A stretch of 64,000 nt of DNA from Macrostomum hystrix (taxonomy: Eukaryota; Animalia; Platyhelminthes): assembly GCA_950097015.1 (NCBI GenBank), contig CATNEN010000002.1, forward strand, positions 930,001 through 994,000. Reading direction: 5' to 3'. The position numbers and the translations under genes were made by a program. The notes beneath the pieces are model-generated. The model ran no database searches. It saw only the letters and a program-made list of their open reading frames with translations, and had not been told where the DNA came from. Every line of letters starts with the position of its first letter. The first letter of the stretch is position 1. Shown here in pieces: positions 1 through 25,040 of this stretch.

Positions 1-2934
1 AGTCCCATGTTCATTCTCCGCACCGATTTGCGCCCTGATTTCGTCACCTAGATGAAAATCTCGGAAGAACCAAGCCGTACACCTACCGTCTTGCAAAGAA
101 GCAAATATTTTTGACACTCCGCGCCTCTCGGTAATGTCCGCCTCCATTAAGTTGTGTTCAGAGAGCGAGCACTGCTCGTAGTTCCCATTGTGAGGCAGAA
201 GATCTCTCTTCGCCTTCATCAGCTCATCCGGCCGAAAGAAAGTATCAAAACACAGGTTCGATACCCTAATGGGTCTAAAGCATCCCTTTTCTTGCTTTTT
301 TGGCTCCGACTCAATCTCAGCAGTTGAGTGCTGCAGAATCCGTGCCTTCCAGCTGCATATGGCCATCAGGAATTCCTTGTGAACTTCAGGCTTTCCGAGT
401 ATATTCATAGCACGAAACTTAATGTGCTTAGCAACCTTGGGCGAATGCTCAAGGAAATCGTGTTCGAAATAAATTCCTTCATCGTCCAAGGTCGAGATCT
501 GAACAAGAACTCTCTTTGGTCTCGCTGCTAGCTCCAGGCCGTAATCAGCACACGTGCAACTATCGTCAAGCTTTCGGCTCTTTTTCATCATAAAAGACAA
601 ATGTTCACAGACTCCTGTTATGTTAAAAACAGAATGGCTTGCTAACTTAGATTCTTCAAAGCCCTTTAAAGCCGAGCGAAGAGCTCGATGAACCATTAGG
701 TCGGCATAGCGTCTCATCGGACTCGTGAAGTGGACGTAGTCCTCCTTCTCCAGGCTGAAGTGGCGCCTTTGCTCCGACGTGCACTCGCTGTACTTTGCCG
801 GCTGGCTCAGCCCGTGCCAGTCGCTGATGGCCAGCCGTAAGTGTGGAAACCGTCTCTCGTCGTACAACAGCGATAGAGCGCCTTGCATATCGCCTCGCTG
901 ACAAAACGCTTTCAAGCTTTCTGCATCATCTTGATGCATTTGAAACGGCATATTCGAGTTCGGAACATCCTTCTCGACTAGATGCAATGCGCGACTCAAC
1001 TCGGCCGAGTGCTGCGCCTTGGATCCGTGTTTCTGCATCCATCGAGTCACGTCGATCTCACGCGGTCGCTGCTGCACTCGAATCGGATAGGCGGGAACCG
1101 AGTCCGCCCGCTGTCGCAGGAACTCTCCGACTGCTGAATTCGCCGCCACCATCAGCTCCTCGACAAGAGCGCTCGTCTCGGGGAACTGCTCGTCTCGCTG
1201 GCGCACAAACGCAGCCTGACCGAGACGCTTCACTCGCCACGCACGCGTCACTGACCACAGCCGAAGCAGCATGTTTGAGACGCGAGGCTCCACGGAGTCG
1301 GTGTTGCCAAGAATCACGCGTTGCACGTCCTCCTTGTTGAGTCTTTTGTCTGAGCGAATCAGTGTCAGGCACGGCCTCCAGTTCTCCACTACTCCATCGG
1401 CATTCATGTTGAACACCACTGACAAGCATCGCCTGTCCTGTCCTTCCACCAGACTGAGTGAGTTCTCAGCCAGTTGACGGGGCAGCATGTGGTTGGTAGG
1501 GACTCCTCTTTGTCTGGCTTCTTTGCTCGGATAGAATGTGGTCCCACGACGTCTGGCCTCTTGATCGATCGGAGTGTTTTCGCCAATGAACTCCGCCACA
1601 TCTGTGATGTGAACGCCGACAGTGAGTCTTCCATTCGCGTCCTCGTGCAAGCTGATGGCATCGTCCATATCCTTTGTCTCCGGGTTGTCGATCGTCACTG
1701 TCAGATGCTTTCGATAGTCTTTGCGATCCTTGGTTCTGATATTATTATTTACCAATTCAGAAATATGTTTTACTTCCCTCTTGGTATCTGCTTCATCTTG
1801 TGGAAATGGTATTCCGTGAATTAGGTGGAGTAGTTCGATTCCGTTTAAAAAGGAGTGGAGTTTCGAAACTACATGAATCACTTTGCCTCGTGGATAGTAC
1901 TTTTGCACAGGCCAATCCATGAAGCAAACAATAAAAAGGTATTGGCAGTTGTGTTTGGTAACTTTAAGTATCGACTTGCCTCTGAATTGGAACTGTCTTG
2001 TTGTTTCGTCGTACACTGGAGAGTAAATGGAAACCAGATTTTTGTTGGCATATTCATACGGCATTTCTTTCAACCGCTCTCTCTTAGTCGTGATACCAAG
2101 CTTTTTACGAAGTGATCTGTGGTTGGGAGACTTTCTTTTCTGAGAATTTTCAAAGCAAAGTCTTGCATACTTATTGTCGTATGAGATTTTCGGCACTGTG
2201 CTGCACAATGGACGCACGCACGTGCCTGGGGCGTCTAGCATCTCACAGACGAAAAGTTTGTAGCGCAAGTGTTCGCGTTGCTTCGAAACGCTGACAACGC
2301 GCCCACACGGTTCTGTGGTGCCTGTTGATCCAGTAGCTCCGGGTTCTCGACATGAAGAACGTAAGTTCTCGTCATTCATTATCTCGACAACTACTTCGTC
2401 ATCCTGGCAAGCTCTGCCACAGTTGCTCCGACCCTTTAGCTGAATCTTTGATATTCGGTCATCGATAGACAGCGGACGCGCCCAGCCAAGCTGAGGCCCT
2501 TCTAAATGAAGCTGGCAGATTTTGTACTTTTCCGGCTGATCATTCATCAAGCCTTGGAGTTGAGCGCGAGTCTTCATAGCCTGATATGGCGGGTTTTCCA
2601 TTAGCTTTCCCCAAAATACGCCAATAGGCTTAGGGACGCTTCTTCTGTCAATAATTTTCACCACAAACTGAGTGCCATGTGGGAGAGAAACTGGTTTGTC
2701 AAGCTGGACTTCTCTCACCGGTGAATTTTTGTCCACGGTCTTTGCTAGCAGGCACCTGCTCGCGTCAGTGCCCAGAGTGCATCGAATGTACTCATCGGGT
2801 TTGGATCTCAGCAGGTTTTTTAGATCGTTTTTTGGTTCCAGAATGCTACGCTCAAAGTCGTCCTCCACTTGACGGTTTTGAAACAATTTTGTTAGCTCTG
2901 CTAACTCGTGACTTTCTTGTTGCTCTTCGACCAT
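1..2934 (-). CDS. HELZ2: HELZ2-like RNB exoribonuclease/helicase paralog 1, first coding exon (978 codons, open at left window edge)
   Basis: Manual translation from the ATG at 2934 gives MVEEQQESHELAELTKLFQNRQVEDDFERSIL..., KYKICQLHLEGPQLGWA, KGRSNCGRACQDDEVVVE, the RNB motifs TIDNPETKDMDDAIS and HFTSPMRRYADL, and ends DFHLGDEIRAQIGAENEHGT, homologous to DIRLGDEMNAQIGSQNNHG in paralog 2. It is missing from the ORF track because no stop lies in the window. The symbol means 'like'; orthology is untested. Confidence 0.9.
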   Translation of the reverse strand, partial: MVEEQQESHELAELTKLFQNRQVEDDFERSILEPKNDLKNLLRSKPDEYIRCTLGTDASRCLLAKTVDKNSPVREVQLDKPVSLPHGTQFVVKIIDRRSVPKPIGVFWGKLMENPPYQAMKTRAQLQGLMNDQPEKYKICQLHLEGPQLGWARPLSIDDRISKIQLKGRSNCGRACQDDEVVVEIMNDENLRSSCREPGATGSTGTTEPCGRVVSVSKQREHLRYKLFVCEMLDAPGTCVRPLCSTVPKISYDNKYARLCFENSQKRKSPNHRSLRKKLGITTKRERLKEMPYEYANKNLVSIYSPVYDETTRQFQFRGKSILKVTKHNCQYLFIVCFMDWPVQKYYPRGKVIHVVSKLHSFLNGIELLHLIHGIPFPQDEADTKREVKHISELVNNNIRTKDRKDYRKHLTVTIDNPETKDMDDAISLHEDANGRLTVGVHITDVAEFIGENTPIDQEARRRGTTFYPSKEARQRGVPTNHMLPRQLAENSLSLVEGQDRRCLSVVFNMNADGVVENWRPCLTLIRSDKRLNKEDVQRVILGNTDSVEPRVSNMLLRLWSVTRAWRVKRLGQAAFVRQRDEQFPETSALVEELMVAANSAVGEFLRQRADSVPAYPIRVQQRPREIDVTRWMQKHGSKAQHSAELSRALHLVEKDVPNSNMPFQMHQDDAESLKAFCQRGDMQGALSLLYDERRFPHLRLAISDWHGLSQPAKYSECTSEQRRHFSLEKEDYVHFTSPMRRYADLMVHRALRSALKGFEESKLASHSVFNITGVCEHLSFMMKKSRKLDDSCTCADYGLELAARPKRVLVQISTLDDEGIYFEHDFLEHSPKVAKHIKFRAMNILGKPEVHKEFLMAICSWKARILQHSTAEIESEPKKQEKGCFRPIRVSNLCFDTFFRPDELMKAKRDLLPHNGNYEQCSLSEHNLMEADITERRGVSKIFASLQDGRCTAWFFRDFHLGDEIRAQIGAENEHGT

Positions 2935-3680
2935 CTTGACTCGAGTCGGTCTCGAAGTCTGTTGGACTTTTTATTTATTTTATTCCTTCTTTTCGCGTGC
3001 GCGTTAGGATCAAAATCTATATTTGAGAGTCAATACTTTCTGCTTTCATAAGTTTGTGTCTCAAGTTTTATAGTATACTAACTGGCAACATTTCCTAGAA
3101 ATTTTGCTGCAGCATATTTCATCCACTGTCCGAACGTTTCATACTCGCTGCAGGTTACTATAGTTGTACTATATGGTTCTAGCTAAGCGCTGTACGTATT
3201 CCGTCTGGTAAAAATCTGTGTGCACAACGGGAAACGCACACTTCTAAAGTGAATCACTGTCATGTACAGTAAAGCGAGGAAGTCATAAAAGAGGTTTTCT
3301 ATCCACCCATTTCTCGTACTAGCCAGACATCCAGTCCAGCTGGCAGCTTTTACGAAATGCTAATTTTAGCCAGCCGTAAGGGACAAAATTTGCCATCGGT
3401 GCGACAGGCTAATTAAAATGCAGATATTAATTATGAGTCGCGGTATGCCAATTTAGACAAAATCGACACGAAAAGGCGGTTGGAAGCAGTTAATAAGTAC
3501 GAGCTATTAAAGTTTTTGAGTGGTTCTATGCCATGAGGATTTAGAAAACAAAATAAAAAAGCAGCTCAGCAGCAAAAAAATGGTGTCAGCCCCAAAAACG
3601 GTGCATCAGATGGCTCGCTAACTGTACACACGAGTGAAAGCAACATTCGGTGGGAGATAGGCTATCTCTGCGGCTCGGAA

Positions 3681-3770
3681 TGCTGACCCTGTGGCAGGGG
3701 TCAGCAAAACTTGGTCCGCGGGCCAGAGGCGGCCCTCGAAGATCCTACAGTCGGCCCGTTGCCCCCTTCC
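3681..3770. mobile_element. possible hAT-type MITE termini
   Basis: CAGGGGTCAGCAAAACTTGGTCCGCGGGCC (from 3695) resembles hAT/Charlie-type ends. It is immediately preceded by the inverted copy TGCTGACCCTG (3681-3691). Confidence 0.3.
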
Positions 3771-3804
3771 GAAACCTACTGTATCCATTATCATAAATTT
3801 TCCC

Positions 3805-5020
3805 GGTCTCATCTCTACCTTATCTCATCTCTCTGTCTCATCTCTCCCCTGTCTCCTCTCTCCCCAGTCTCATCTCTGCCCTGGCTTATCTCTCCCAGTC
3901 TCATATCTTCCCTGTCTCATCTCTACCTTATCTCATCTCTCTGTCTCATCTCTCCCCTGTCTCATCTCTCCCCAGTCTCATCTCTGCCCTGGCTTATCTC
4001 TCCCAGTCTCATCTCTTCCCTGTCTCATCTCTACCTTATCTCATCTCTCTTTGTCTGATCTCTGGCCTGTCTCATCTCTTCCCAGTCTCATCTCTCCCCA
4101 GTCTCATCTCTCCCCAGTCGCATCTCTCCCCAGTCGCATCTCTGCCCTGTCTCATCTCTCCACTGTCTCATCTCTCCCCAGTCTCATCTCTCCCCAGTCG
4201 CATCTCTGCCCTGTCTCATCTCTCCACTGTCTCATCTCTCCCCTGTCTCATCTCTACCTTATCTCATCTCTCTCTGTTTTATCTCTCCCCTGTCTCATCT
4301 CTGCACTGTCTCATCTCTCCCCTGTCTCATCTCTACCTTATCTCATCTCTCTCTGTTTTATCTCTGCCCTGTCTCATCTCTCCACTGTCTCATCTCTCCC
4401 CTGTCTCATCTCTACCTTATCTCATCTCTCTCTGTTTTATCTCTGCCCTGTCTCATCTCTCCCCTGTCTCATCTATGCCCTGTCTCATCTCTCTCTGTCT
4501 CTTCTCTCCCCTGTCTCATCTCTCTCTGTCTCATCTCTGGTCTGTCTCATCTCTTCCCAGTCTCATCTCTCCCCAGTCTCATCTCTCCCCAGTCTCATCT
4601 CTCCCCAGTCTCATCTCTCCCCAGTCTCATCTCTCCCCTGTCTCATCTCTCCCCTGTCTCATCTCTCCCCAGTCTCATCTCTCCCCTGTCTCATCTCTCT
4701 CTGTCTCATCTCTGGTCTGTCTCATCTCTTCCCAGTCTCGTCTCTCCCCAGTCTCATCTCTCCCCTGTCTCATCTCTACCTTATCTCATCTCTCTCTGTT
4801 TTATCTCTCCCCTGTCTCATCTCTCCCCAGTCTCATCTCTCCCCTGTCTCATCTCTCCCCTGTCTCATCTCTCCCCAGTCTCATCTCTCCCCAGTCTCAT
4901 CTCTCCACTGTCTCATCTCTCCCCAGTCTCATCTCTCCCCTGTCTCATCTCTGCCCTGTCTCATCTCTCCCCTGTATCATCTCTGCCCTGTCTCATCTCT
5001 CCCCAGTCTCATCTCATCGC
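3805..5020. repeat. ~16-bp minisatellite (TCTCATCTCTCCCC[A/T]G)n
   Basis: Directly visible tandem units. It explains the spurious 456-aa and 185-aa Ser/Leu ORFs. Confidence 0.95.
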
Positions 5021-5710
5021 TCCCCTGTTTGAATCGCTTTTTTCCAGCTCGACGTATTTAGATAGCCGCCAAGATGGATACATGGGTGGAAAAATACCTT
5101 AGTTTTAGTAGCTATCGACAGCAAAAAAATTAGCTCGTATAAACACTGCAGCTCGCTTTGTTCCAAATTTATTGGAAAACTAATAGGCTCTCAGAAGTCT
5201 GCACTCGCAATTTGCGCTGAGTCAGTGACGCAAGCCTTGTGAGCAGAAGATCCACGCGACAATAGAAAATAAGCAGTGCAGGGCTACGCTTGTACTCGTA
5301 CATTATTCAACGGACAGGGCGACATTCTAAAAAGCAAAGACACAGTTGCAGAACTGTACAATTGTCAATACAAAGGCAATTCCTGCTATCTTTTTTCTAA
5401 GCCGCCGACGCTGTACTTTGTACTCCAGTCTTGGGGTGGGTAGCTGCAGAATTTACTGGAAATTCCACGTACTCCTAGATTGAAAATTCTCTATAAATGT
5501 ATGCCTCATTTTGTAATTTTTTGGCTAAATATTTTTTTAACTTCGTGGACTATATTGTATCCTGAAGAAGCCGCTGTCTATAGCTGGTGACTAGAAATTC
5601 GGTAAGCTTCGTTTGAGTTCCACAATGCTTTGAATTAAGCACTCATTACTGCTCATATTGACCTTCATGTTCTGGTAAAAAAAACCGACTCCATCTTTCT
5701 TCCTCAGACC

Positions 5711-8700
5711 ATGAGCAAGCCACCGGAGCCTGCAAATTTCCGGGATAAAAAGCTGCTCGAACTAGTGCACCTGTTTCACTATCGACAACAAGAGGACGAC
5801 TTCGAGAAAAGCATTTTGAATCCCGAAAACTGGCTTGCCAGCAAAGTGAGGGAATTTCCAGATAAGTACAAGATTTGCGTGCTAGGTCAGGATGCTGACA
5901 GTGATCAAATTGCTGTTCCCATCGATTCCGTTGGAGACTCCAAGCCGATACAAATCTACTTGGACAAGAAACTCACTATGACCCATGGATCGAAAATTGT
6001 CGTTGAGCTAACTCAATCCAACGCATTAGGCCAGTTTCGAGGAATATTTAAAGGTAGACTGCTGGACAAGCCTCCATACCAAATGAAGACCAAAGCGCAG
6101 CTGATCGAGCTGATGCAGCAGAGTCCGGAAAAGTACAAAATTTGTCGTTTGCAATTGGACGGACCGCAGCTCGGATGGGCCTACCCGCTCTCTTCCGAGG
6201 ATCCCATTCAGAGGATCCAGCTGAAAGGACGCAGCAACTGCGGCAGAGCGTGTGACGACGACGAAGTGATTGTCGAAGTGAAAGAAATAGACGAAAACGG
6301 AGTTGAGGCCCACGGAGCTGTGGTGGGAGTGTGGCGTCAGAAGGAAAAGCTGAAGTACAAGCTGTTTGTTTGCGAAGTCATTGAAGACTATGGGTCTCTA
6401 ATGAGACCCATATGCAAGAGTGTGCCGAAAATTTCGTATCTAAATCATTATGCGATCCGAATTCATCAATGGAAAATTAACCGCACTAGAACAGTTGCCG
6501 CGCTAGAAAGAATGTCGAGAGGAATGACTTCTACCGCCGAGGCCTTGTACCACGCAGCACATGATTATGCGAATCGCAATCTCGTATCTGTTTACGAACC
6601 TTTCGAGGATGATAGCACTGGAAAGATCTGCTTTCAAGAAAATAGAATTGAGAGGATACTAAAGCACGATTGTGATAGTCTCTTTATCGTTTGCTTTGAT
6701 GAATGGCCCGTGGATAGATGGTACCCACGCGGAAGAGTTGTCCACGTGGTGTCAAAAGAACAATCTTTTTTAAAAACACTAGATCTGATTCAGGTAAGGC
6801 ATGCCGTGCCCCCTCTGATCCAGTTAAAAACAAGCCCGATGACACGACAAACAATGGCAATTGAAAAACGAGCAAAGAAACGTGTTCATCATCAGTCAGA
6901 AGGCAGAATCGACTTCAGCGATCACTTAACAGTGACAATCGACAACCCGGAGACAAAGGATATGGACGATGCCATCAGCTTGCACGAGGACGCGAATGGA
7001 AGACTCACTGTCGGCGTTCACATCACAGATGTGGCGGAGTTCATTGGCGAAAACACTCCGATCGATCAAGAGGCCAGACGTCGTGGGACCACATTCTATC
7101 CGAGCAAAGAAGCCAGACAAAGAGGAGTCCCTACCAACCACATGCTGCCCCGTCAACTGGCTGAGAACTCACTCAGTCTGGTGGAAGGACAGGACAGGCG
7201 ATGCTTGTCAGTGGTGTTCAACATGAATGCCGATGGAGTAGTGGAGAACTGGAGGCCGTGCCTGACACTGATTCGCTCAGACAAAAGACTCAACAAGGAG
7301 GACGTGCAACGCGTGATTCTTGGCAACACCGACTCCGTGGAGCCTCGCGTCTCAAACATGCTGCTTCGGCTGTGGTCAGTGACGCGTGCGTGGCGAGTGA
7401 AGCGTCTCGGTCAGGCTGCGTTTGTGCGCCAGCGAGACGAGCAGTTCCCCGAGACGAGCGCTCTTGTCGAGGAGCTGATGGTGGCGGCGAATTCAGCAGT
7501 CGGAGAGTTCCTGCGACAGCGGGCGGACTCGGTTCCCGCCTATCCGATTCGAGTGCAGCAGCGACCGCGTGAGATCGACGTGACTCGATGGATGCAGAAA
7601 CACGGATCCAAGGCGCAGCACTCGGCCGAGTTGAGTCGCGCATTGCATCTAGTCGAGAAGGATGTTCCGAACTCGAATATGCCGTTTCAAATGCATCAAG
7701 ATGATGCAGAAAGCTTGAAAGCGTTTTGTCAGCGAGGCGATATGCAAGGCGCTCTATCGCTGTTGTACGACGAGAGACGGTTTCCACACTTACGGCTGGC
7801 CATCAGCGACTGGCACGGGCTGAGCCAGCCGGCAAAGTACAGCGAGTGCACGTCGGAGCAAAGGCGCCACTTCAGCCTGGAGAAGGAGGACTACGTCCAC
7901 TTCACGAGTCCGATGAGACGCTATGCCGACCTAATGGTTCATCGAGCACTCCGCATCTGTCTTGGGCGATTGAATGAACTATTTCAATTAGCTCTAGAAT
8001 GCGAACTGGCTAAAAATATCTGCGAGGCTCTGTCAGCAGCATCGATACGTACTCGTCGGTATCAAGTAAGCACTAAAAGTGCTGAAATAGCATTACTTTT
8101 AAGGTTAATGCCGAAAAAAGTAATTGTTCAAGTTTCGATGCTAGACGATGAAGGAATCGTTTTTGAGCACGAGATGCTTGACGGCGAGCCTAAAATTGCC
8201 AGACTCGTTCAGTTTCGATTCCTGAACCTTTGCGAAAAGCCTGAGGAAAAGGAGCCCTCTGTGCTAGTCGGCTGCAAGTGGAAGGCTCGAATACTTCGAC
8301 ATACCACAACTGTTGACGAACCGAGAACTGGGGAAGCACTCGCAGCAGCCGGTAGAACTTGGCATGATCCGATCAAGGTTGTCAGTGCATCGATTCTCAG
8401 AAGCTTTCGGCCTCGAGAGCTTCTGCTGGCAAAGGAGGAGCTTTTCAAAAATGAGTGGGACTTCTCGAAGTGCAGCATCTCGAGCGCCAAGTTCATGGAG
8501 GCTGATATTTCTGATAAGCGTGGCGTGTCAAAGGTCTACTCCACCACTGACGGTCACGGTAGCTCTGTGTGGTTCTATCGCGACATTCGTCTCGGTGATG
8601 AAATGAATGCCCAGATTGGATCCCAGAATAATCACGGAATGATGGCGCCGACGCTAAATCTCATCGAAATCTGTGACACCTTCTCAATTTGTCTCGCTCA

Positions 8701-11700
8701 CCGCCGTCGACCGGCTGACCGTTTCGAGCGAGTTGTTCGACGATACAGCCAACTTGTTTATCAAAGCATTGACGAGTACGTCGACATTTGGCAAAACATT
8801 GTTGCCTTGGAATCAGCCTCAGTGTCTATCGCAAACAACGAGACGTTTGTTCTGTGCGATGTTCCGCTATTGTGGCAGTGGGACCAGCGAAACAAACGAT
8901 GGCTTGGAATGTTTAACTTGACAGCCGACTTTTGCACCTCGAACAACCTGTCCTTCACAGACTCAGTTGTGATGGAGAAGATAAGCTCTTGGTCTAAAAA
9001 GATAGAGAAATTTCAGGACAGAGGACAGTCAATCGAAGATGTCTCTGATGCAGTGTTCTCGACAGCCATGAAGATGACGCGCTACTCAGAGTACATCTGC
9101 CTTCGCGCGAACATGAAATGTGCAGAGGCGGGTAACGACTACACATGGGTTGGACACGGAGGCGTTTTGCTTGTGTTCGACGGCCTTCACTGCCAGTCTA
9201 AAATGTGCAACAACAGGTCCTTGCACTTTTGCAACTTTGTTGTCTTTCAACTGAACGAGGTGAGCCCAGGTGAGAGTGCGCCTCAGGATGAGATCAGAGT
9301 CGCTACTGTGGAGCTAGTGATGAAGTTTCTGCCGAACAGAAGACACGAGCTGGTGCTGCAGGCAATGCGGCATCAAAGCGGAGTCAGCGCTTCGTGCTCT
9401 CTGGTTCGATGGGACCAGCAGAAGGACGCTGTTGGTGGTAAGCTTTGATTCTTTCACTTTCAGATTTCACTTCAAATAAAACGTCGCAGCCGCTTGGAGA
9501 ATTTAGGAAGATTTTTTTGGCAAAGGGGGTACTTTTGAGGAGATGCAGTACATGAGGAGACTAAAATAAAAAAAATTGAAATACAATTTCAGTCGACGCT
9601 TTGATCTATAAAACAACGCTAATGGAGAACAATGTTGATTCGTACGCGATTCACGTTACAAACAACGGGCGGAAGTCTGTTCGGACTGTGCCGTGCAACA
9701 AATGTCAGAATGACGCTCTCGAGAGGGCGATAGACAAGCGCGTTTCTCTCATTTGGGGGCCGCCTGGTAATCGAAATTCAGTTTCAGTTGATTTCTCACT
9801 TTTGATTATGATGATATAGGTTAATCTTTTTATTAGTTGCTTATTTTATCTCACTGGCTAGTGTATTAGCAGTATTGTCAGTCAAATTTTATTGCGCATT
9901 GCTTTAAATAATCGGCTTTAGGCTAGGCCAGTCAAAACACGCGAGTCAGTAGGTCAGCCAAACCACAGGTTGTCACACACCACAAATTTTCAGCAATGCG
10001 ACAGAGAAATTGATCTGATCAGAAAGCAGCATGGCAGGACCCTTGTGACAGTGCCATCACAGCACAAACAGTGCTATCGTCATAACTTATTGAGTCAAAA
10101 TCAGAACTTTGCATGGCCCTCTTTGAATAATTTTAGGTACAGGCAAAACCACCACTGGAGTGATGCTTGCCTTTTGGTTTTCGTTTATCAACCGATATCG
10201 CAGGGACGCCTTGCCGATGCCGGACTTTCAACAGCCAAGCGATGACGAAGAAGACGAGGACGACAATGAAGACTTAGAGACGGATTTTGAAGAGATCGAA
10301 GAAGTCGATGCGTCACTCACTGAAGCCAACCAAGACGGCTTCCAGACAGTACGCTATAGACATCGCCAGTCGCACAGCTCAACATCATCGACCGTTGTTT
10401 CTGACCGACGCAGATGGCAGAAGCTGGAGACGCGGGAGGTTCAGAGCCGACGCCAGATCCTGTGCTGCGGTCCATCGAACCGCTCAGTCGATGTGATTGT
10501 CGAAGCCTCTCGAGACCTTCTGCTGAACCAGTGTCCGTCAATGGTTCGCGTCTACAGCGAGCAGGTGGAGCGAGTTCACTATCCGATTCCCGGAGAGCTT
10601 GCCACTGCTGACGAAGTAGTCCCAGCGATGAGAAGGTATGCACTGCATGAGCTCATTCGGAGTGAGAACAGCGACGAAAGCTACATAATCTGCGGATTCG
10701 ACACGGCATTTCGCAAGTTCATCGGCAGCCCTGAAGAGCAGCCCATCACGATGGAACGCGCACTAAGAGAAGCAGCTGCGACCAACTCGCGCTTCGCTCA
10801 ATTTATTCGAAACAGACGACTTCGATCAACTCGGCGAGGCGCCTTGGAGCTCGCAGAAGAGGAGGCTGGCAGTGATGCACTCGTTCAGGGCTGTGTCAAG
10901 CTCTACAAAGATAAAGTGCTGAAAGCCAAGATGAGGGTGCTGCAGAACTTCGATGTCGTTCTGTGCACCACGTCTGTCAGCTGCAGCTCCGTTATCCAGC
11001 GCGCTTGTCGCTTCGTTCAGATCATCATCGACGAGGCGGGAATGTGCACTCAGCCGGAGCTGCTTGTTCCCATTGTTGGTCGATTGAGTGTCAACATCAC
11101 CGTTCCATCGAGTCTTGGCGCGAGCTCTCGTACCTTTGGAGGCACGGCCGCGTCACAATTTGCCGAGCGAGTTGTCCTGATCGGTGACCACAAGCAGCTG
11201 GCTCCGATCATTCAGAACAAGACGGCTGCAGAGCTGGGACTGAGCAAGACGTTTCTCGAGATGCACTGTCTCGACTCGGTTATGCTCAATCAGCAGTACC
11301 GCATGGTGAGTATTTGATTTGCTTATCTGCTCTGTAATGATAAACATAGTGTAAGGGAATGAATAATGATTGCGAAACTCGCTTACTTCTCAGCACCCGA
11401 GTCTGGCCGACTTTCCGTCCAAGCGCTTCTACACTGTCAGAGACTCTGGCGGACTGCGCACTCAGCCGTCCAAGTCTTGGACCGGAGTGCTCGATACTGA
11501 GACCAAGATGCAGGCAGGCTGCAGTTCCCAGTGGAATGGACTGAACTGGCACAAGCTGAATAAGGCTGAGCTCTTTGACAGCAAGGATGCCAGCGGAGTG
11601 AGACGTCATGGTCTACTGACGGAGCGCAACGCGAACGTGTTGCACGGATGCTGGCCAGGTGTGAGACGAGACAGGCCGTTCGACACGCTGCCAGATGTGC

Positions 11701-12624
11701 CGGTGAGCGAGTTTCATCCGATGGGTGAGGAGGAGAGAATCGTCTTCCTGCACATCGAAGGTCGAGAGGAGCGAACGTTCGTTGCCACTGAGGATGGTCG
11801 AGAGGACTCGTACAAGAACGAACAAGAAATCGACACAGTCGTGAGTGCCTTTTATGAGTATAGTTATTTGCTAATGATTCATTGTGCCGATTTGTTTTTA
11901 CGTGCTGCGGTCGAAATTTTTCGCCTACTTATTTCCACTACTTCAATCAATTTGGGTTTTCTGTTTCTGAATTCAGATTCGGGTCTACAGGGAGATTTTG
12001 CACCGACTGAGTGGCCCTGACAGGAATGATCCTCACCGATGCGTGGCGCTGATGTCGCAGTACCGGTTCCAGGTCGCTGCGATCAAACAACGCCTGCAGT
12101 CTGAGAGCCTGCCGATGCCCACGGTCAGCACGGTGATCGCCTGTCAGGGCAGCGAGTTCGCATATGTGCTGCTCAGCCTGGTCCGCTCCATGCCGAGCTA
12201 CGACATTGAGGAGAACCCGCTGCCCGGCTGGGAGCGGAAGTTCCTCGGCTTCATCACCGATGAGAACCAGACCAACGTGGCGCTGACGAGGGCTCAGCGG
12301 GGCCTAATTATCGTTGGTTAGTTGTTGGGTATCGAAAGAAAGCTGTACATGTACTCGAATTTCATGTAGTTGATGTCAACAGTTTACGAAGCCAACTTGA
12401 TGTTCATTTATTAGTCCAATGAACATGCCATTCTCAAGGTTTAATTTTTGCCCCCCCTCACTTTTTCCTGATTAACAGGCAACAAAAAGCTTCTGTGCCG
12501 CGATCCAAACTGGTCCCACTTGCTGCATGATCTTCAGGAGCGCGGTTGCATCCCAATGCATGCCAAGGACTTTCCTAACCACACAGGATTCAGGCGGGCG
12601 CTCACTAGGTCTGGTCGGCTATAA
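5711..12624 (+). CDS. HELZ2: HELZ2-like RNB exoribonuclease + UPF1-like SF1 helicase, paralog 2; join(5711..9437,9593..9766,10137..11305,11394..11840,11977..12316,12479..12624), 2000 aa
   Basis: All introns are GT..AG with consistent phases, and the total of 6003 nt is divisible by 3. The CSD/OB-like KGRSNCGRACDDDEVIVEV and RNB motifs TIDNPETKDMDDAIS, LVEELMVAAN and HFTSPMRRYADL are present. Walker A GPPG|TGKT is split by intron 2; other helicase motifs are IIIDEAG, GDHKQLAP, LNQQYRM|HP, QGSE and NVALTRAQ. Confidence 0.92.
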
Positions 12625-12749
12625 AACAGTCACGAGCAGACAAATGACAAGTAAAATTGACTAGTTTAGCAGCTTGTGCTTTGTATTTGACGTTTCGTAT
12701 GGCGGTAATGTATTTAAATTGATAAATGCGTATTTTTCTGCACTTTACG

Positions 12750-13092
12750 CGGAAGTTCCTCGGCTTCATCACCGATGAGAAACAGACCAACGTGGCGCTG
12801 ACGAGGGCTCAGTGGGGCCTCGTTATTATCGGTGAGGCCAGATATCGCTTTTTCATGATAAAAATGATAAAAATGCTTTTTACAAGGCAAAGCTTTTATG
12901 AGGAACAGGATCTATTATATTTTGGTCCCCTACGCAGGCAACAAGCTTCTGTTGCGACGCGATCCGATCTGGTCCTATCTGATGGACGATCTTAAGCAGC
13001 GCGGCTGCATTCCGAAACGCCCGGACGACTTTCCTAATCTGACGGTGGATATTCCTAATCAGCGCAAACTGACGAGGACTGGGAGGCTGTGA
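12750..13092 (+). CDS. duplicated 3' end of the helicase gene: partial penultimate exon (~12750-12831) plus intact alternative terminal exon 12938..13092
   Basis: RKFLGFITDEKQTNVALTRAQWGLVII followed by G|gtgag, then cag|GCAAC giving GNKLLLRRDPIWSYLMDDLKQRGCIPKRPDDFPNLTVDIPNQRKLTRTGRL*. It has the same splice phase as exon 6. Confidence 0.75.
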
Positions 13093-14999: not shown

Positions 15000-15303
15000 A
15001 CTGGCTAACTAGAAGGCTGGTTTGAATGCCACTCGATTTCTGCCTTATCTCATTCCTCCAAAAACCTTCCAAAAACAAAAAGAAAAACAAATTGCAAGAA
15101 TGATACGCCATATTATCTTTTTTAAACATACCTATGCCAAATTAGCACATAAATTTATTGACATATTCATTGAATATCAAATTAAAGATCAAATGGCACA
15201 TTGTTTCTCTTTAAAACTTCAGACACATAAACAAAAAAGCCAATTGACCGAACCACTACTGCAAAGTCTCTGCTTCATCTACGATTGCTTCATCACTGCC
15301 GAC

Positions 15304-16866
15304 TCACTCCACATTCAGCACCACCAGTCGACTTTTCCAGACGTCAGCCACCACGAGCTGCTCGCGCGTGCCTCCCATCACCACCGCCAGACCACATGGA
15401 TATTTGAATCTGCCGACACCGCTGCCGCTCTCGCCCGGCACCCCCAGAGTCCACAGCAGCGACCCGTCGTCTGCAGCCACTGCTCGCACTGAGTCACCCA
15501 TCCACTCACTCACGAACAGGCGGCCTCTCCTGTCCACGGCCACACCCATCGGCCAAACAAACTCTTTGAGACCGCAACGCTCAGTCGGGTGCGAGGCGAC
15601 CACCTGCTGGGTGTCAATGCGCACTCTGTGCACCTGCTTGTGCTCACAGTCTGTCACGAGAATGCAGTTGTCGTGAATCGCCACTCTGCCCAGTCCAGCA
15701 TCAGGAAGCTCAGACAGCGTGATGACCGTCTCCATCTCGCCAGTCGCTTTGCTGAATGCAACAGTTTTGTTGCCACCAGACACAAACACGGAGGCTGCGT
15801 TGCCGCCGATTCCCTCAATGCCACGAAAGCCCTCGATTTGTGGTTCGACTCGACGCACCGTTCGACCGCTCAGGTCCGTCATTGTCACTGCGTCCTCTTG
15901 AGCAATGAACAGCAGCTGACGGTCACAGAGAAGACCCCAGATCCACTTCTTCCAGTCGATGTCGCAGCGGCACCGCAGCTTCTTCGAGCCGTCCACAGAC
16001 AACGCCTGAAGGTGGTCTTTGCTGTCTAGCGCTAAAAATGCGAAGATGCAGGGCTGAGGCAGAGCCTCACCGCCGTCACTCGCTGACTCGGCGGCCACCA
16101 CACGGCCCGAACGGTCACCAACGAATCCGCTGGTGTCGCTGCACACCGCCAGCCACTCAACCCAGCCATCCAGCTTCACTTCATGACTGAACACGATCGG
16201 ATCTAGCAATACCTGTCTCGCCATCGCCATCGCCTTCATTGCGTCGTCGATCTCCTCGGGTGTCGCCCTGACCTCAGCGTCTCTCCAGCCCTCACGAGTC
16301 CACACGTTCACACGAGCCAACGCTCTGCCGAACTTTTCCGACACCTGCCCCAGTCGCTCCAGCTGCTGCTCCGCTCCCAAGCTCTCCTCCAACGACTTCT
16401 GCAGCCGATCAAAGTCCGCCTTCAAGTCATCGAGCGACAACTCCATCGACATCGTCAGCTCGACAAGCTTCGACATGTCGCCTGCAGCCTCCGCCATCGC
16501 CGTCTCCTGCCTGTAGCTTCTCACATCGTCCATGTCCCGCTGCCACACACGCGCTGTCTCAATCCGAGCTATCATCGGACATGTCAGTCGATCTTCACTC
16601 GAATCTCGTGAATCCAATCTCCTCCACCACCTGCTGCACTGCCGCCTGCAGCTTCGGCTTGTGGGAAGGCACGCAGCTTCTCATCGACCTTCTCCTTCAG
16701 CTTGAGGGCATCCGCCACATCAACACTCAGGTGTTCCGAGCACAGGTAGTGCTCTGAGAACGGACCCCGGCCGACTGCAGCTTTTTGGCAGACGACGCAG
16801 ATTGGGATGGCTTCAGGAGGTCCTTCGGAACTCGAGCTGTCGCTGCATGGGGTCTCCACGCTGCAT
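15304..16866 (-). pseudogene. B-box-like/coiled-coil/NHL-repeat gene, frameshifted copy
   Basis: Near-identical to 21549..23168 but has a 4-bp insertion (GCAT, ~16845) and a 58-bp deletion (equivalent to 22854-22911). These split it into track ORFs 16584..16859 and 15304..16617. Confidence 0.8.
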
Positions 16867-17289
16867 TTTCAGATTCGAGGTCTGGAAAGAGAGTCGGAAA
16901 GAGGCCGTGAGAGTTGAAGACTGCTGCTGGAATCTGCCAGAACTCTAATATTATCTCAGTGTCAAAAATGCTCAACTTCAATCCGCTACCTCAGAAAGCT
17001 GGGAAGCAGAAAAGTTGCAGAGCTGCCGTAAGCAGGCCGATGCTGAGGCTCAGGTGAGAATGAGTTTCAATCAGACAGCAGTCAAAAGCTGTGCTCAGGT
17101 TTTTGAGATGACTCTCTCGTAAGCTAGGTGTCTCAGTTAAACTCTAATCTGTTGCTAAGCAACAGTGAGAAGCCTGAGTCTGGTCGCTATTGGAGAACAG
17201 AATGAAATCATTGAGCTGCTATTGCTGGAGGGACAGGAGGAGAGGAGACGGGAAGGAGAAGGAGGAAAGAGTACCTGAAACTCAGTGGA

Positions 17290-17490
17290 CATGTCAGTGC
17301 GTGTTAGGTGAAGCAGTGGGTGTCAGGGGAAGCAGTGGGTGTCAGGTGAATCAGTGGGTGTCAGGTGAAGCAGTGGGTGTCAGAGGAAGCAGTGGGTGTT
17401 AGGTGAAGCAGTGGGTGTTAGTTGAAGCCGTGGGTGGCAGGTGAATCAGTGGGTTTCAGGTGAAGCAGTGGGTGTCAGGTGAAGCAGTGG
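17290..17490. repeat. 19-bp minisatellite (TCAGGTGAAGCAGTGGGTG)n
   Basis: Visible tandem units; a longer homologous array lies at 23740-24140. Confidence 0.9.
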
Positions 17491-17684
17491 GCATCAGGAT
17501 ATTTACCTTATAGACTGGAGATTCACCATTTAGATGGGAGATTTACCTGTGAAACTGAATATTCACCTGTTAGATATGGCTCTAATTAAAAAATCGAATG
17601 CAGCAGAACCAGTGACACCTACTTGCTGAATTCCAGCTGCATCAAAATAAGCTCAGACTCAGGTTCAGAGACAAATCAGAAAAC

Positions 17685-18210
17685 CAGTTCTTGTGCCGTC
17701 TGCGAAAAAGCCGCAGTCGGCCGGGATCCTACCTGTGCTCGGAACACCTGAGTGTTGATGTGGCGGATGCCATCAAGCTGAAGAACCATGTTGATGAGGA
17801 GCTGAGTGCCTACTCTCAAGCCGAAGCTGCAGGTGTGCCGGATGTCAGGCAGAATCTGCTTCAAAGAATGCTCAAGCGAAATGCCGTTGTGGATAAGGCC
17901 TTCAATAACATTCAGCAAAGCCTTCATTCGCACCGCTCTCTCCTGACAGACTTCATGAATGCTCGAGTTGAGACAGTCAATGCATGGCAGCGGGACCTCG
18001 AAGACATCGAAAGTTACAAAGAAGAGGTCGCGGAGGCTGGCTTTGTCCATGGACTTGTCGCTTCCGGAGCTAGAGGCGGACTTTGATCGGGCGCAGAAGT
18101 TGGTTGACAATTCGGAAGTCGAGCAGCAGCTGGAGCGACTGCGCCGACTCGAGAATCTCGTGGACAGTGTTGCGGCTGCTGAAGTCGGGACTGTGGCATC
18201 CAGAGACTGA
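17685..18210 (+). pseudogene. truncated B-box-like/coiled-coil fragment related to the NHL gene (no NHL domain)
   Basis: CAVCEKAAVGR, then a frameshift to YLCSEHLSVDVADAIKLK...ARVETVNAWQRDLEDIESY, then a frameshift to LSLPELEADFDRAQKL. These match CVVCQKAAVGR/YLCSEHLSVDVAD/ARIETARVWQRDMDDV/LSLDDLKADFDRLQK of the intact gene. Confidence 0.75.
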
Positions 18211-18219
18211 TGCCATCAG

Positions 18220-18410
18220 GGTTCTTCTCCCCCTGATCCTTCAGGGTTCTACTCCCCCTGATCCTTCAGTGTTCTACTCCCCCTGATCCTTCAGAGTTCT
18301 ACTCCCCCTGATCCTTTAGTGTTCTACTCCCCCTGATCCTTCAGTGTTCTACTCCCACTGATCCTTGAGTGTTCTACTACCCCTTATCCAGCCCTTTCAA
18401 ACCCTGATCC
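18220..18410. repeat. 25-bp minisatellite (GTTCTACTCCCCCTGATCCTTCAGT)n
   Basis: Units start at 18246, 18271 and onward; a shorter homologous array lies at ~25050-25145. Confidence 0.9.
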
Positions 18411-19059
18411 CTCAATATTCTATTGCCCCCTTGATGCATGTCTCATCCTAGAAATTGTGTGCAATTTGAAGTAAGACATGCCATTATTAGTTTGTTTACA
18501 AAACGTGATAAATTTGTAATAAATCAATCCCACTGGCCACCTGAGTCCTACTCAAGATTCTCAAGTGCAAAGACTCGGGCAAGAATCTGTCTTCCCGCGG
18601 ATCAGCTAAGAATGTTTCTCGCTGAAACAGCAGCTGCAAAATTTGGGGATAATTACGCTTCTGAAATTTCCTTCCAGCTGTCCGGATTGCCACCTGAATC
18701 TGTTGTGGTGGGGCCGATTTCATAAAATACAGCTAACGGCTTTTTAGCTGCGACTTGGACTACTTTTCCATGACTTGGTTTCATAAACGCATAGCTATCA
18801 AGCCACAGCTTGATGTCTATGGTAAAAGCCGTTGAGGCCGCAGGGCCATGATATATATATTCGATTTCATAAAACTAGTCGTGGTAGAAAAGCAGTGTCT
18901 ATTTAGCAGTAAATTTCCAGCCTGCCTCGAACACGGCTAGCGAATGAATTTTTTTCATTTACACGGTCTACTTAATGAGCAAGAAGGCAGACAAGCTCGA
19001 GTCTTCCTGGACAGGCGTTATTTCGCTGTTACAGCAGATTTTGTGCAGAGATTCAGACT

Positions 19060-21305: not shown

Positions 21306-21548
21306 TTTTCTCCAAAAACATTCCAAAAAAGAAAAAACAATAACAATTAACAAAATGCAGCAATGATGCGCTATATTGTCATTCTTTATCATACCCATGC
21401 TTAATTACCATATACATTTATTGACATATTCAATAAAATAGGACAATTTGTTCCTCTCGTTAAAACTTCAAACGCATAAACAAAAGAGCCTTTTCACCGA
21501 ACAACTCCTGCAAAGTCTCTGCTTCATCTACGCTCACTGACTGACGAC

Positions 21549-23168
21549 TCACTCCATATTCAGCACCACCAGTCGACTGTTGCCGGTGTCAGTCACCACC
21601 AGCTGCTCGCGCGCGCCTCCCGTCACCACCGCCAGACCGCATGGACCATTGAATCTGCCGCAACCGCTGCCGCTCTCGCCCGGCACCCCTAGAGTCCACA
21701 GCAGCGACCCGTCGTCTGCAGCCACCGCTCGCACTGAGTCACCCATCCACTCACTCACGAACAGGCGGCCTCTCCTGTCCACGGCCACACCCATCGGCCA
21801 AACAAACTCTTTGAGACCGCAACGCTCAGTCGGGTGCGAGGCGACCACCTGCTGGGTGTCAATGCGCACTCTGTGCACCTGCTTGTGCTCACAGTCTGTC
21901 ACCAGAATGCAGTTGTCGTGAATCGCCACTCTGCCCAGTCCAGCATCAGGAAGCTCAGACAGCGTGATGACCGTCTCCATCACGCCAGTTGCTTTGCTGA
22001 AGGCAACAATTTTGTTGCCAACAGACACAAACACGGAGGCTGCGTTGCCGCCGATTCCCTCAATGCCACGAAAGCCCTCGATTTGTGGTTTGATTCGACG
22101 CACCTTTCGACCGCTCAGGTCCGTCACTGTCACTGCGTCAGATTGAGCAATGAACAGCAGCTGACGGTCACAGAGAAGACCCCAGATCCACTTCTTCCAG
22201 TCGATGTCGCAGCGGCACCGCAGCTTCTTCGAGCCGTCCACAGACACCACCTGAAGGTGGTCTATGTCACTACTTGGTGAAAATGATGCGAAGATGCAGG
22301 GCTGAGGCAGAGCCTCACCGCCGTCACTCGCTGCCTCGGTGGCCACCACACGGCCCGAACGGTCACCAACGAATCCACTGGTGTCGCTGCACACCGCCAG
22401 CCACTCAACCCAGCCATCCAGCTTCACTTCATGACTGAACACGATCGGATCGAACAATGCCTGTCTCGCCATCGCCATCGCCTTCATTGCGTCGTCGATC
22501 TCCTCGGGTGTCGCGCTGACCTCAGCGTCTCTCCAGCCCTCACGAGTCCACACGTTCACACGAGCCAACGCTCTGCCGAACTTTTCCGACACCTGCCCCA
22601 GTCGCTCCAGCTGTTGCTCCGCTCCCAAGCTCTCCTCCAACGACTTCTGCAGCCGATCAAAGTCCGCCTTCAAGTCATCGAGCGACAACTCCATCGACAT
22701 CGTCAGCTCGACAAGCTTCGACATGTCGCCTGCAGCCTCCGCCATCGCCGTCTCCTGCCTGTAGCTTCTCACATCGTCCATGTCCCGCTGCCACACACGC
22801 GCTGTCTCAATCCGAGCTATCATCGGACCTGTCAGTCGATCTTCACTCGAATCCAGGTATCTCCGCATTGTCTCATACAGCTGCTTCGCCCGTCGCAGCT
22901 GCTCCTCCATCTCGTGAATCCAATCTCCTCCACCACCTGCTGCACTGCCGCCTGCAGCTTCGGCTTGTGGGAAGGCACGCAGCTTCTCATCGACCTTCTC
23001 CTTCAGCTTGAGGACATCCGCCACATCAACACTCAGGTGTTCCGAGCACAGGTAGCGCTCGGAGAACGGACCCCGGCCGACTGCAGCTTTTTGGCAGACG
23101 ACGCAGATTGGGATGGCTTCAGGAGGTCCTTCGGAACTCGAGCTGTCGCTGGGGTCTCCACGCTGCAT
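21549..23168 (-). CDS. B-box-like zinc finger + coiled coil + NHL beta-propeller protein (TRIM-NHL-like, no RING), 539 aa
   Basis: The N-terminus has CVVC-x16-CSEH and a heptad-rich middle. NHL-type repeats are FVWPMGVAVDRRGRLFVSEWMGDSVRAV and FNGPCGLAV...LVVTDTGNSRLVVL. The ORF is intact, with an acceptor-like ctctttccag about 15 nt upstream of the ATG. Confidence 0.85.
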   Translation of the reverse strand: MQRGDPSDSSSSEGPPEAIPICVVCQKAAVGRGPFSERYLCSEHLSVDVADVLKLKEKVDEKLRAFPQAEAAGGSAAGGGGDWIHEMEEQLRRAKQLYETMRRYLDSSEDRLTGPMIARIETARVWQRDMDDVRSYRQETAMAEAAGDMSKLVELTMSMELSLDDLKADFDRLQKSLEESLGAEQQLERLGQVSEKFGRALARVNVWTREGWRDAEVSATPEEIDDAMKAMAMARQALFDPIVFSHEVKLDGWVEWLAVCSDTSGFVGDRSGRVVATEAASDGGEALPQPCIFASFSPSSDIDHLQVVSVDGSKKLRCRCDIDWKKWIWGLLCDRQLLFIAQSDAVTVTDLSGRKVRRIKPQIEGFRGIEGIGGNAASVFVSVGNKIVAFSKATGVMETVITLSELPDAGLGRVAIHDNCILVTDCEHKQVHRVRIDTQQVVASHPTERCGLKEFVWPMGVAVDRRGRLFVSEWMGDSVRAVAADDGSLLWTLGVPGESGSGCGRFNGPCGLAVVTGGAREQLVVTDTGNSRLVVLNME

Positions 23169-23739
23169 TTTCAGATTCGAGGTCTGGAAAGAGAGTCGGA
23201 AAGAGGCCGTGAGAGTTGAAGACTGCTGCTGGAATCTGCCAGAACTCTAATATTATCTCAGTGTCAAAAATGCTCAACTTCAATCCGCTACCTCAGAAAG
23301 CTGGGAAGCAGAAAAGTTGCAGAGCTGCCGTAAGCAGGCCGATGCTGAGGCTCAGGTGAGAATGAGTTTCAATCAGACAGCAGTCAAAAGCTGTGCTCAG
23401 GTTTTTGAGATGACTCTCTCGTAAGCTAGGTGTCTCAGTTAAACTCTAATCTGTTGCTAAGCAACAGTGAGAAGCCTGAGTCTGGTCGCTATTGGAGAAC
23501 AGAAATCATTGAGCTGCTATTGCTGGAGGGATAGGAGGAGAGGAGACGGGATGGAGGAGGAGGAAAGAGTACCTGAAACAAAGGGCGCGCAGGTAGGAAG
23601 GGAACAGCAGTTAATGTACTGCGTGGTGTGTGCAGTGCCTGAGTTTACAGTTCCAATTACATTGTTCCCGCCTCTACATGCATTGTAATTTTTTCTCTTT
23701 GACGCTGACTTGGACTCAGTGGAGATGTCAGCGCGTGTC

Positions 23740-24140
23740 AGGTGAAGCAGTGGGTATCTGGTGAAGCAGTGGGTGTCAGGTGAATCAGTGGGTGTCAGGT
23801 GAATCAGTGGGTGTCAGGTGAAGCAGTGGGTAACAGGTGAATCAGTGGGTGTCAGAGGAAGCAGTGGGTGTCAGGTGAAGCAGTGGGTGTCAGATGAAGC
23901 AGTGGGTGTCAGGTGAATCAGTGGGTGTCAGGTGAATCAGTGGGTGTCAGGTGAATCAGTGGGTGTCAGGTGAATCAGTGGGTGTCAGGTGAATCAGTGG
24001 GTGTCAGATGAAGCAGTGGGTGTCAGGTGAATCAGTGGGTATCTGGTGAAGCAGTGGGTGTCAGGTGAATCAGTGGGTGTCAGGTGAATCAGTGGGTGTC
24101 AGGTGAATCAGTGCGTGTCAGGTGAAGCAGTGGGTGTCAG
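23740..24140. repeat. 19-bp minisatellite (TCAGGTGAA[G/T]CAGTGGGTG)n
   Basis: Visible tandem units. Confidence 0.9.
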
Positions 24141-24514
24141 AGAAACGCAACGCAAAATGAGTGGGAGCAGAGAGCTCGGGTGTGAGCAGTTTGTATTGTA
24201 TTCTGCAGAATTATTCAGTAGAAACCAGTTTTGTCCGGTTTACAACTGAACTGAACTGAATAACAACACAACTGAATAATATTGCTCCAAATTTAACTGC
24301 AAAATGTAAACACTTGACACTGCGACACTCAAGGTAGCAACTCACAACTCTGAATCGGCAATCCCTAGTCTGGAACGAATTCGCCATAACATAATATAAG
24401 CGTCAAACACTCAAGTCGGCACTGAGTGAGCAGCAGAACCAGTGACACCTAATTGCTGAATTCCAGCTGCATCAAAATAAGCTCAGACTCAGGTTCAGAG
24501 ACAAATCAGAAAAC

Positions 24515-25040
24515 CAGTTCTTGTGTCGTCTGTGAAAAAGCCGCAGTCGGCCGGGATCCTACCTGTGCTCGGAACACCTGAGTGTTGATGTGGCGGATGC
24601 CATCAAGCTGAAGAACCATGTTGATGAGGAGCTGAGTGCCTACTCTCAAGCCGAAGCTGCAGGTGTGCCGGATGTCAGGCAGAATCTGCTTCAAAGAATG
24701 CTCAAGCGAAATGCCGTTGTGGATAAGGCCTTCAATAACATTCAGCAAAGCCTTCATTCGCACCGCTCTCTCCTGACAGACTTCATGAATGCTCGAGTTG
24801 AGACAGTCAATGCATGGCAGCGGGACCTCGAAGACATCGAAAGTTACAAAGAAGAGGTCGCGGAGGCTGGCCTTGTCCATGGACTTGTCGCTTCCGGAGC
24901 TAGAGGCGGACTTTGATCGGGCGCAGAAGTTGGTTGACAATCGGAAGTCGAGCAGCAGCTGGAGCGACTGCGCCGACTCGAGAATCTCGTGGACAGTGTT
25001 GCGGCTGCTGAAGTCGGGACTGTGGCATCCAGAGACTGAT
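24515..25040 (+). pseudogene. second truncated B-box-like/coiled-coil fragment
   Basis: Near-identical to 17685-18210 and shares the same frameshift after the CxxC. Confidence 0.75.

Follow-up and report, generated by a model that had tools for sequence, protein, structure and literature searches.

A patchwork of homogenised and divergent blocks in three HELZ2-like genes of the flatworm Macrostomum hystrix points to repeated interlocus gene conversion

Where two close copies form an inverted repeat on one chromosome, as in palindromes or inverted gene pairs, intrachromosomal arm-to-arm conversion keeps them identical, and crossovers invert the spacer without deleting it. Ectopic conversion among the duplicated genes of Drosophila has been reviewed (PMC3924832). 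Mosaic interlocus conversion has been described for the tandem paralogs GOT1p1 and GOT1p2 of Tigriopus californicus (PMC3728101) and for HMA4 of Arabidopsis halleri (bioRxiv 10.1101/2025.10.29.685298), and the theory has been reviewed (PMC3924837). Long-lasting concerted evolution in a part of a gene is known from prokaryotic cases (PMC6053082) and from the mtrA duplicates (PMC4632066). Here we describe three paralogs, c1, c2 and c3, in a 64,000-nucleotide stretch of Macrostomum hystrix (assembly GCA_950097015.1, contig CATNEN010000002.1, positions 930,001 to 994,000), referred to as the window. They resemble vertebrate HELZ2, an interferon-induced RNB 3′–5′ exoribonuclease with helicase domains (PMC10516660) that restricts LINE-1 (PMC9839780). 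Coordinates follow the numbering of this 64-kb window, and negative values lie to the left of its start. We consider it very probable that c1, c2 and c3 are anciently diverged paralogs that have been patched repeatedly by non-allelic (interlocus) gene conversion wherever they are still similar enough to pair.

The locus shares three features with GOT1p1/GOT1p2 and HMA4: blocks of low and high divergence alternate, silent sites are identical within the low blocks, and islands of divergence persist despite conversion. It differs from them in that the paralogs separated no later than a deep split between species, across which synonymous divergence (dS) is saturated; a second species has the same tract; two of the copies are inverted, head to head; and one non-homologous junction is accompanied by a leftover exon cassette. 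As in the prokaryotic cases and mtrA, the paralogs of one genome cluster with one another in the converted part even though they duplicated before speciation; in contrast to those cases, the locus is nuclear, belongs to an animal and contains introns, and within one gene there are several tracts that differ in age and partner. Compared with inverted-repeat systems, the repeat arms here are two internal gene segments only, and the remaining "arms" have diverged beyond recognition. The process is well known, and the locus is an unusually tidy case of it and not a new mechanism. In the literature on Macrostomum and gene conversion, our search turned up no account of this locus.

The central element is a tract covering the catalytic core of the RNB domain. 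The c1 tract is the reverse complement of the c2 tract with 99.7% identity over 1026 bp, and the longest perfect run is 1010 nt (683–1692 versus 6938–7947). A first-pass annotation, made from the letters alone, had described 683–1701 and 6929–7947 as inverted segments of 1019 bp that are essentially identical; they are, with one mismatch. The identical antisense open reading frames (ORFs) that it listed there (165 aa; 843–1340 on the plus strand and 7290–7787 on the minus strand) are also real, and they are identical because the underlying DNA is. The third copy, c3, was said to differ at a handful of sites, and the count is about 13 inside the block (about 1.3–1.8%). In protein terms, the block opens with LTVTIDNPETKDMDD, which belongs to RNB motif I, and closes with SPMRRYADLMVHRALR of motif IV. 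The codon alignment, in which the tract ends at MVHRALR, agrees with the earlier placement of the limits at the first and last RNB motifs, and its edge tracks show sharp tract ends.

The contrast between the core and its flanks is clear at silent sites. For c1 and c2, the proportions of synonymous and nonsynonymous differences (pS and pN) are both 0 in the core, while in the flanking blocks they are 0.73–0.90 and 0.29–0.59, respectively. The divergence of c1 just outside the core is as strong as the first-pass annotation had stated, and synonymous divergence in the core is far lower than in the flanks. Among fourfold-degenerate sites in conserved codons, 157 of 157 are identical in the core and 50 of 179 in the flanks (Fisher, 1e-51), which agrees with the earlier argument that protein-level selection alone cannot produce such identity. 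In 2000 shuffles of the same match and mismatch states, no identical run exceeded 42 nt, as compared with the 1010 nt observed. In the whole 220-Mb genome (42 contigs), the core is present in c1, c2 and c3 only; the other genomic paralogs are distant (33–38% protein identity). The G+C content at third codon positions (GC3) is 0.65–0.67 in the core, as compared with 0.42–0.44 in blocks without any homogenisation (p 1e-9 to 1e-11) and with 0.39 in the corresponding core of a non-converting paralog (p 2e-13 versus the converting core); the raised core value fits GC-biased conversion. A mobile cassette was also considered and dropped: the core occurs in three genes only, inside one continuous exon, and its ends carry no repeat or element features.

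The comparison with Macrostomum lignano separates the history of the core from that of the flanks. Contig NIVC01000591.1 of that species carries a matching head-to-head pair, MlA of the c2/c3 type and MlB of the c1 type. In every flank block, c1 is nearest to MlB, and c2 and c3 are nearest to MlA in protein identity. In the core, c1 and c2 are equal and c3 is nearly so (99–100%), each is 74% identical to both M. lignano genes, and MlA and MlB are 88% identical to each other. Maximum-likelihood trees accordingly conflict, as the first-pass annotation had expected of per-domain phylogenies: the flanks give {c1, MlB} against {c2, c3, MlA} with support of 92–100, and the core gives {MlA, MlB} against {c1, c2, c3} with support of 100/100. 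Approximately unbiased (AU) tests reject c1+MlB for the core (p = 7e-42), and for the flanks they reject MlA+MlB (p = 9e-9) and c1+c2+c3 (p = 2e-8). Between the species, the core has a pS of 0.63–0.66 and a pN of 0.14–0.15, in orthologous and paralogous pairs alike. These values are similar to those of the flanks; the core is therefore not under unusual constraint, and selection on its synonymous sites is excluded.

A corresponding tract is found within the M. lignano pair. MlA and MlB are 90% identical over 1044 bp of the RNB region, at the same alignment positions as in c1 and c2, with a pS of 0.24 in the tract and 0.68–0.81 in the flanks. Their helicase tracts are 96–97% identical, and the flanks within the pair are at most 72% identical or undetected. 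On sequence evidence, these comparisons show that DNA was copied between the paralogs repeatedly and in both lineages. Gene conversion, and its qualification as recurrent, had been proposed in the first-pass annotation; zero synonymous divergence in the core beside saturated flanks, the conflicting trees and the matching M. lignano tract strongly support the former, and the different tract ages support the latter (in the core, 0 differences for c1–c2, about 1.3–1.8% for c3 and 10% for the M. lignano pair; in the helicase, 88% to 100% identity).

By their predicted domains, c1, c2 and c3 are HELZ2-like genes with two or three oligonucleotide/oligosaccharide-binding (OB) or cold-shock folds, an RNB 3′–5′ exoribonuclease domain and a UPF1-type helicase. 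Three long ORFs each contain OB_HELZ2 and RNB domains in Pfam. RNB (PF00773) scores 210–219 bits in all three copies, and OB_HELZ2 (PF25049), N-terminal to it, scores 84–98 bits, the gathering cutoff being 29.3 in both cases; a second, weaker OB fold lies at residues 40–105, and the CSD2 match is weak. Residues 397–775 of c2 are homologous to solved structures of RNase R, DIS3 and DIS3L2. As read from the translations, c1, c2 and c3 retain the motif I catalytic aspartates, TIDNPETKDMDDAIS, and the motif IV arginine in SPMRRYADL. Motif I has all four aspartates (DNPETKDMDD) in the three copies; in human HELZ2, the second position is occupied by Asn. In the protein collection, only M. lignano proteins (about 2000 aa, 55–64% identity) are closely related; they combine OB_HELZ2, RNB, AAA_11 and AAA_12 and map exon by exon onto c1, c2 and c3. 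This mapping, in which exons were matched individually and each was handled separately, indicates that each long ORF is exon 1 of a six-exon gene with the helicase in later exons: a UPF1-type superfamily 1 (SF1) helicase lies C-terminal to RNB, and AAA_11 was found by Pfam in exon 3 of c2.

The ORF of c1 becomes 1273 aa once positions 925001–930000 of the contig are joined on, and its later exons lie to the left of the window, at contig positions about 925,800–928,500. The c2 ORF (5711–9448) has 1245 aa, with a GTAAG donor at 9437 closing exon 1, and the c3 ORF (30656–34399) has 1247 aa. The c1 and c2 genes are arranged head to head with 2.8 kb between them, and c3 lies 25 kb downstream in the orientation of c2. 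The c1/c2 spacer presumably carries divergent promoters. Much of it is filled by a 16-nt minisatellite, CCCTGTCTCATCTCTC, of about 77 copies (3802–5015), whose composition is strongly strand-asymmetric. An N-terminal helicase such as that of vertebrate HELZ2, upstream of the OB folds, was not found: the three ORFs open with the OB region, and the M. lignano models have none either. These genes are for that reason called HELZ2-like and not strict HELZ2 orthologues. In the post-RNB region (c2 residues 749–1245), Pfam gave no family at E ≤ 1, and the structure predicted from a six-row alignment had a mean predicted local distance difference test (pLDDT) score of 46.6, too low for a fold search. 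An Rfam scan of 1–40000 gave no RNA family.

The nuclease core, singled out in the first-pass annotation, turned out not to be the only shared part. The 3′ part of the helicase is homogenised across all three copies, with identities from 88% to 100%, and the introns and the 3′ flank are included. Between c1 and c2, this tract is 94.5% identical over 2315 bp. Exon 3b (87.7%) and intron 3 (88.2%) are the least similar parts, followed by exon 4 (99.8%), intron 4 (100%), exon 5 (98.2%), intron 5 (99.3%) and exon 6 (100%); the 3′ flank is 98.5% identical over 132 nt, and past the tract the identity is about 36%. Since introns and the 3′ flank are identical as well, the exchange took place at the DNA level. 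Just past the tract, c2 contains what appears to be its original 3′ cassette: a second exon 5 end (12749–12836), 94% identical to c3 37227–37314, and an open exon 6 of its own type (about 12940–13086), 78% identical to c3. Both are c3-like and not c1-like, indicating that a c1-type 3′ cassette was pasted into c2. For the 3′ cassette alone, these leftover exons show a direction of transfer, apparently from c1 to c2, and the right junction of this transfer is, as read here, one resolved without homology. The leftover exon 5 end, intron and exon 6 might serve c2 as an alternative terminal exon.

The relationship between c2 and c3 is a patchwork of its own (Table 1). The first-pass annotation took the three paralogs to be otherwise diverged, which does not hold for this pair: c2 and c3 are near-identical in three coding blocks and most downstream exons and are saturated in three other blocks. 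The OB_HELZ2 block is homogenised between c2 and c3 only and is saturated relative to c1, and the tract from the post-RNB region through intron 1 and exon 2 has only about 54% protein identity to c1. Farther downstream, most exons are 92–99% identical and introns 1 and 3 are 91–96% identical, while intron 2, intron 5 and exon 6 are at 50–66%. In the variable blocks, the c2–c3 distance is about equal to the c2–MlA distance. Hence c2 and c3 are old paralogs carrying several tracts and not products of a young duplication. On whether c2 and c3 separated before or after the two species did, the variable blocks group c2 with c3 at just 69/71 support, and the V2 block alone groups c2 with MlA at 79/85. 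At least five tracts, differing in age and partner, are distributed across the locus. The likeness to immune-receptor families suggested in the first-pass annotation found no support: the flanks fall into ancient, stable orthology groups with M. lignano, there are three copies plus the distant paralogs, and the saturated dS gives no estimate of dN/dS (the ratio of nonsynonymous to synonymous divergence).

Table 1 Coordinates of the genes, tracts and c2–c3 alignment blocks
Feature	Position	Strand	Basis or partner	Identity or divergence
c1, first exon of HELZ2-like gene	1–2934	−	ORF, start at 2934, off the left window edge to −887	
c1/c2 spacer	2935–5710		between head-to-head genes	
c2 gene	5711–12618	+	tblastn with M. 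lignano proteins	
c2 exons	about 5711–9436, 9571–9786, 10052–11305, 11376–11858, 11977–12318, 12472–12618	+	tblastn with M. lignano proteins	
c3 gene	30656–37753	+	ORF, Pfam, M. lignano protein mapping	
c3 exons	about 30656–34387, 34522–34737, 35109–36278, 36341–36838, 36970–37311, 37613–37753	+	M. lignano protein mapping	
c1 RNB-core tract, motif I to motif IV	676–1701	−	c2 6929–7954, inverted	
c2 RNB-core tract	6929–7954	+	c1 676–1701, inverted	
c3 RNB-core tract	31874–32901	+	c1 and c2	98.1–98.4%
c2–c3 tract, OB_HELZ2 block	6082–6439	+	31030–31387	94.7%, dS 0.08
c2–c3 tract, post-RNB region, intron 1, exon 2	8100–9793	+	33051–34744	97.9%
c2 helicase 3′ tract common with c1	10442–12750	+	c1 partner at −2010 to −4315	
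c2 leftover original 3′ cassette	12749–13086	+	downstream of the c1-type cassette and the present stop codon of c2	
c2–c3 alignment	codon columns 1–125			pS 0.75
c2–c3 alignment	codon columns 126–245			dS 0.08
c2–c3 alignment	codon columns 246–420			pS 0.80
c2–c3 alignment	codon columns 421–764			dS 0.055
c2–c3 alignment	codon columns 765–822			pS 0.70
c2–c3 alignment	codon columns 823–1268			dS 0.014

These features can be accommodated in a simple scheme. Double-strand-break repair would take a paralog as its template, and heteroduplex would form and extend only at high identity. Both ends of the RNB tract fall within the most strongly constrained pair of motifs, where selection on the protein would keep the nucleotides similar and so anchor the pairing; the interior of the tract would be held similar by the conversions themselves, making the pattern self-sustaining. 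Divergence of the flanks, whether neutral or selected, would now stop the extension. The close, inverted c1/c2 layout would tolerate such exchange, since a crossover there would flip the spacer but leave it in place. The exchanged parts are the RNB core (about 1.03 kb, in all three copies), the 3′ part of the helicase with its introns and 3′ flank (in all three, most recently from c1 into c2), and the further c2–c3 blocks. The first OB fold, the CSD2 region, the segment directly following motif IV and, in c1, the whole middle region have seen no exchange since roughly the time when the M. lignano lineage separated, or an earlier one. What set the positions of the boundaries, and any role of selection in this, we infer from the pattern, which looks like homology-limited patchwork conversion and not like a dedicated "constant core" mechanism.

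Data independent of the assembly were available as Logan contigs from four sequencing runs of two studies; such contigs cannot phase the copies. In the four runs, the core is a single contig (from 731 or 802 to 1668) that branches at 683–712 and 1663–1701. The branches match the flanks of c1, c2 and c3, the loose ends being c2 6899–6928 and c3 31853–31882 and 32890–32919. In run X2, the deepest, the word depth is 252 in the core and 81–89 in the flanks, a ratio of about 3. The only alternative letters in the core interior (802–1668) are known c3 variants. A separate observation concerns run X4 (2020 study), in which a contig over 683–831 has 7 extra changes within 753–801, where the RNB tract has its right edge; 6 of the 7 are G>A on the plus strand, and they match none of the three assembled copies. 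They may represent a strain-specific tract end or clustered mutation.

Several points weigh against the conversion reading, or against its sharper details. One is that the M. lignano RNB tract (4703–5745 versus 11204–12246) is patchy, with 62–91% identity in its 5′ third and 91–100% elsewhere. This suggests that a younger sub-tract may lie inside an older one, and it indicates that the motif-to-motif sharpness is specific to the most recent events of the M. hystrix genome. Another is that the GC3 excess of the core may partly stem from amino-acid or codon composition. A third is that selection against conversion of the flanks is indistinguishable from simple loss of homology. The remaining points concern the contigs. 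At 1147 and 1594, for which the assembly gives the c1/c2 letter (c1 = C), all four runs, the one from the possible source sample among them, show the c3-type letter, and the majority path has c3-type letters at 765 in three of the four runs and at 1016 and 1082 in two of the four. This placement of variants among runs fits different copies in different animals, or it could reflect small consensus errors; it is compatible with ongoing exchange and falls short of showing it. Consequently, the near-identity of the cores and the three junctions are independently supported, while the exact identity of c1 and c2 comes from the assembly alone.

The alternative that survives best assigns a role to selection: modularity would be maintained because selection promotes conversion in the catalytic engines and opposes it in the OB/CSD substrate-recognition modules, the paralogs having different RNA targets. 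The never-exchanged blocks are indeed OB-fold/CSD regions and the segment towards the S1-like region, OB, CSD and S1 parts guide the substrate in RNB enzymes (PMC10516660), the pattern persists in two lineages, and islands of divergence under conversion have been interpreted in this manner elsewhere (PMC3728101, PMC3924837). However, the strong OB_HELZ2 block was exchanged between c2 and c3, so that OB folds are not exempt as such; the saturation of dS precludes a test of selection; and the same picture would be expected from loss of homology by itself. We regard this explanation as possible, with the chances leaning against it. A more elaborate version takes the locus to be a combinatorial RNA-surveillance module, in which selection would keep shared nuclease and helicase engines behind three OB/CSD front ends and c1/c2 inversions would swap the front ends in frame. 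If this were true, inversion at the 1-kb inverted repeat or at the helicase inverted pair would give segregating chimeric enzymes. We consider it improbable.

An artefact of assembly or polishing, in which the cores truly differ and the reads of one copy corrected the others, is a very unlikely source of the pattern. Suspicion is raised by the perfection of the c1/c2 run (1010 nt with 0 differences) and by 1147 and 1594, where the contigs of every run disagree with the assembly. Against this, two independent studies collapse the core to one path with three flank branches, the X2 depth there is about three times that of the flanks, the variants of the core interior are all known c3 letters, and the X4 extras are confined to the right edge. 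Besides, c3 retains its about 13 private differences, so there was no blanket collapse; the independent assembly of M. lignano has the matching tract at 90%; and GC3 is raised in the core of all copies.

Recent duplication, with the identical blocks as an unaltered remnant and flanks that diverged fast or were replaced from unsampled donors, could appeal to the long c2–c3 stretches of 97–100% identity, some introns included. It is hardly tenable in view of the saturated synonymous sites of the flanks (pS 0.70–0.90), the grouping of the c1 flanks with MlB and the c2/c3 flanks with MlA, and the equal distances of c2 to c3 and to MlA in the variable blocks. Moreover, the genome contains no other donor above 38% protein identity, the leftover exon 6 of c2 is just 78% identical to c3, and no homology exists upstream of the start codons. 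Extreme purifying selection on amino acids and synonymous sites (for example, through RNA structure or codon use), without DNA exchange, draws on the coincidence of the tract with the catalytic RNB part and its ends in the two most conserved motifs, but it is scarcely credible given flank-like core values between the species (pS 0.63–0.66, pN 0.15), a core tree that groups by species, and equally identical helicase-tract introns and 3′ flank.

Other features of the window concern repeats, in which it is rich, minisatellites in particular. A separate tandem duplication lies between c2 and c3 (15071–18696 and 21333–25428, 92–98% identity). It contains minus-strand ORFs (15304–16617 and 21549–23168) with weak NHL-repeat matches, and also 19-nt and 14-nt minisatellites. 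Large minisatellite arrays occupy 46084–47078, 47606–48657, 51688–53832 and 56208–58223; the last two have a 30-nt period and are 92–93% alike.

Interlocus gene conversion, as the very probable reading, makes this locus a clean, internally controlled animal example of domain-scale concerted evolution. What is unusual is the combination at one locus of tract ends at catalytic motifs, replication across a deep species split, and a junction that reveals the direction of transfer. In practical terms, phylogenies and dN/dS scans of the family mislead unless the tracts are masked, and short-read mapping and variant calling collapse the three copies. For the family itself, the genes amount to a small flatworm expansion of HELZ2-like nucleases, and a functional look at them may be worthwhile, given the antiviral and anti-LINE-1 role of HELZ2 in vertebrates.

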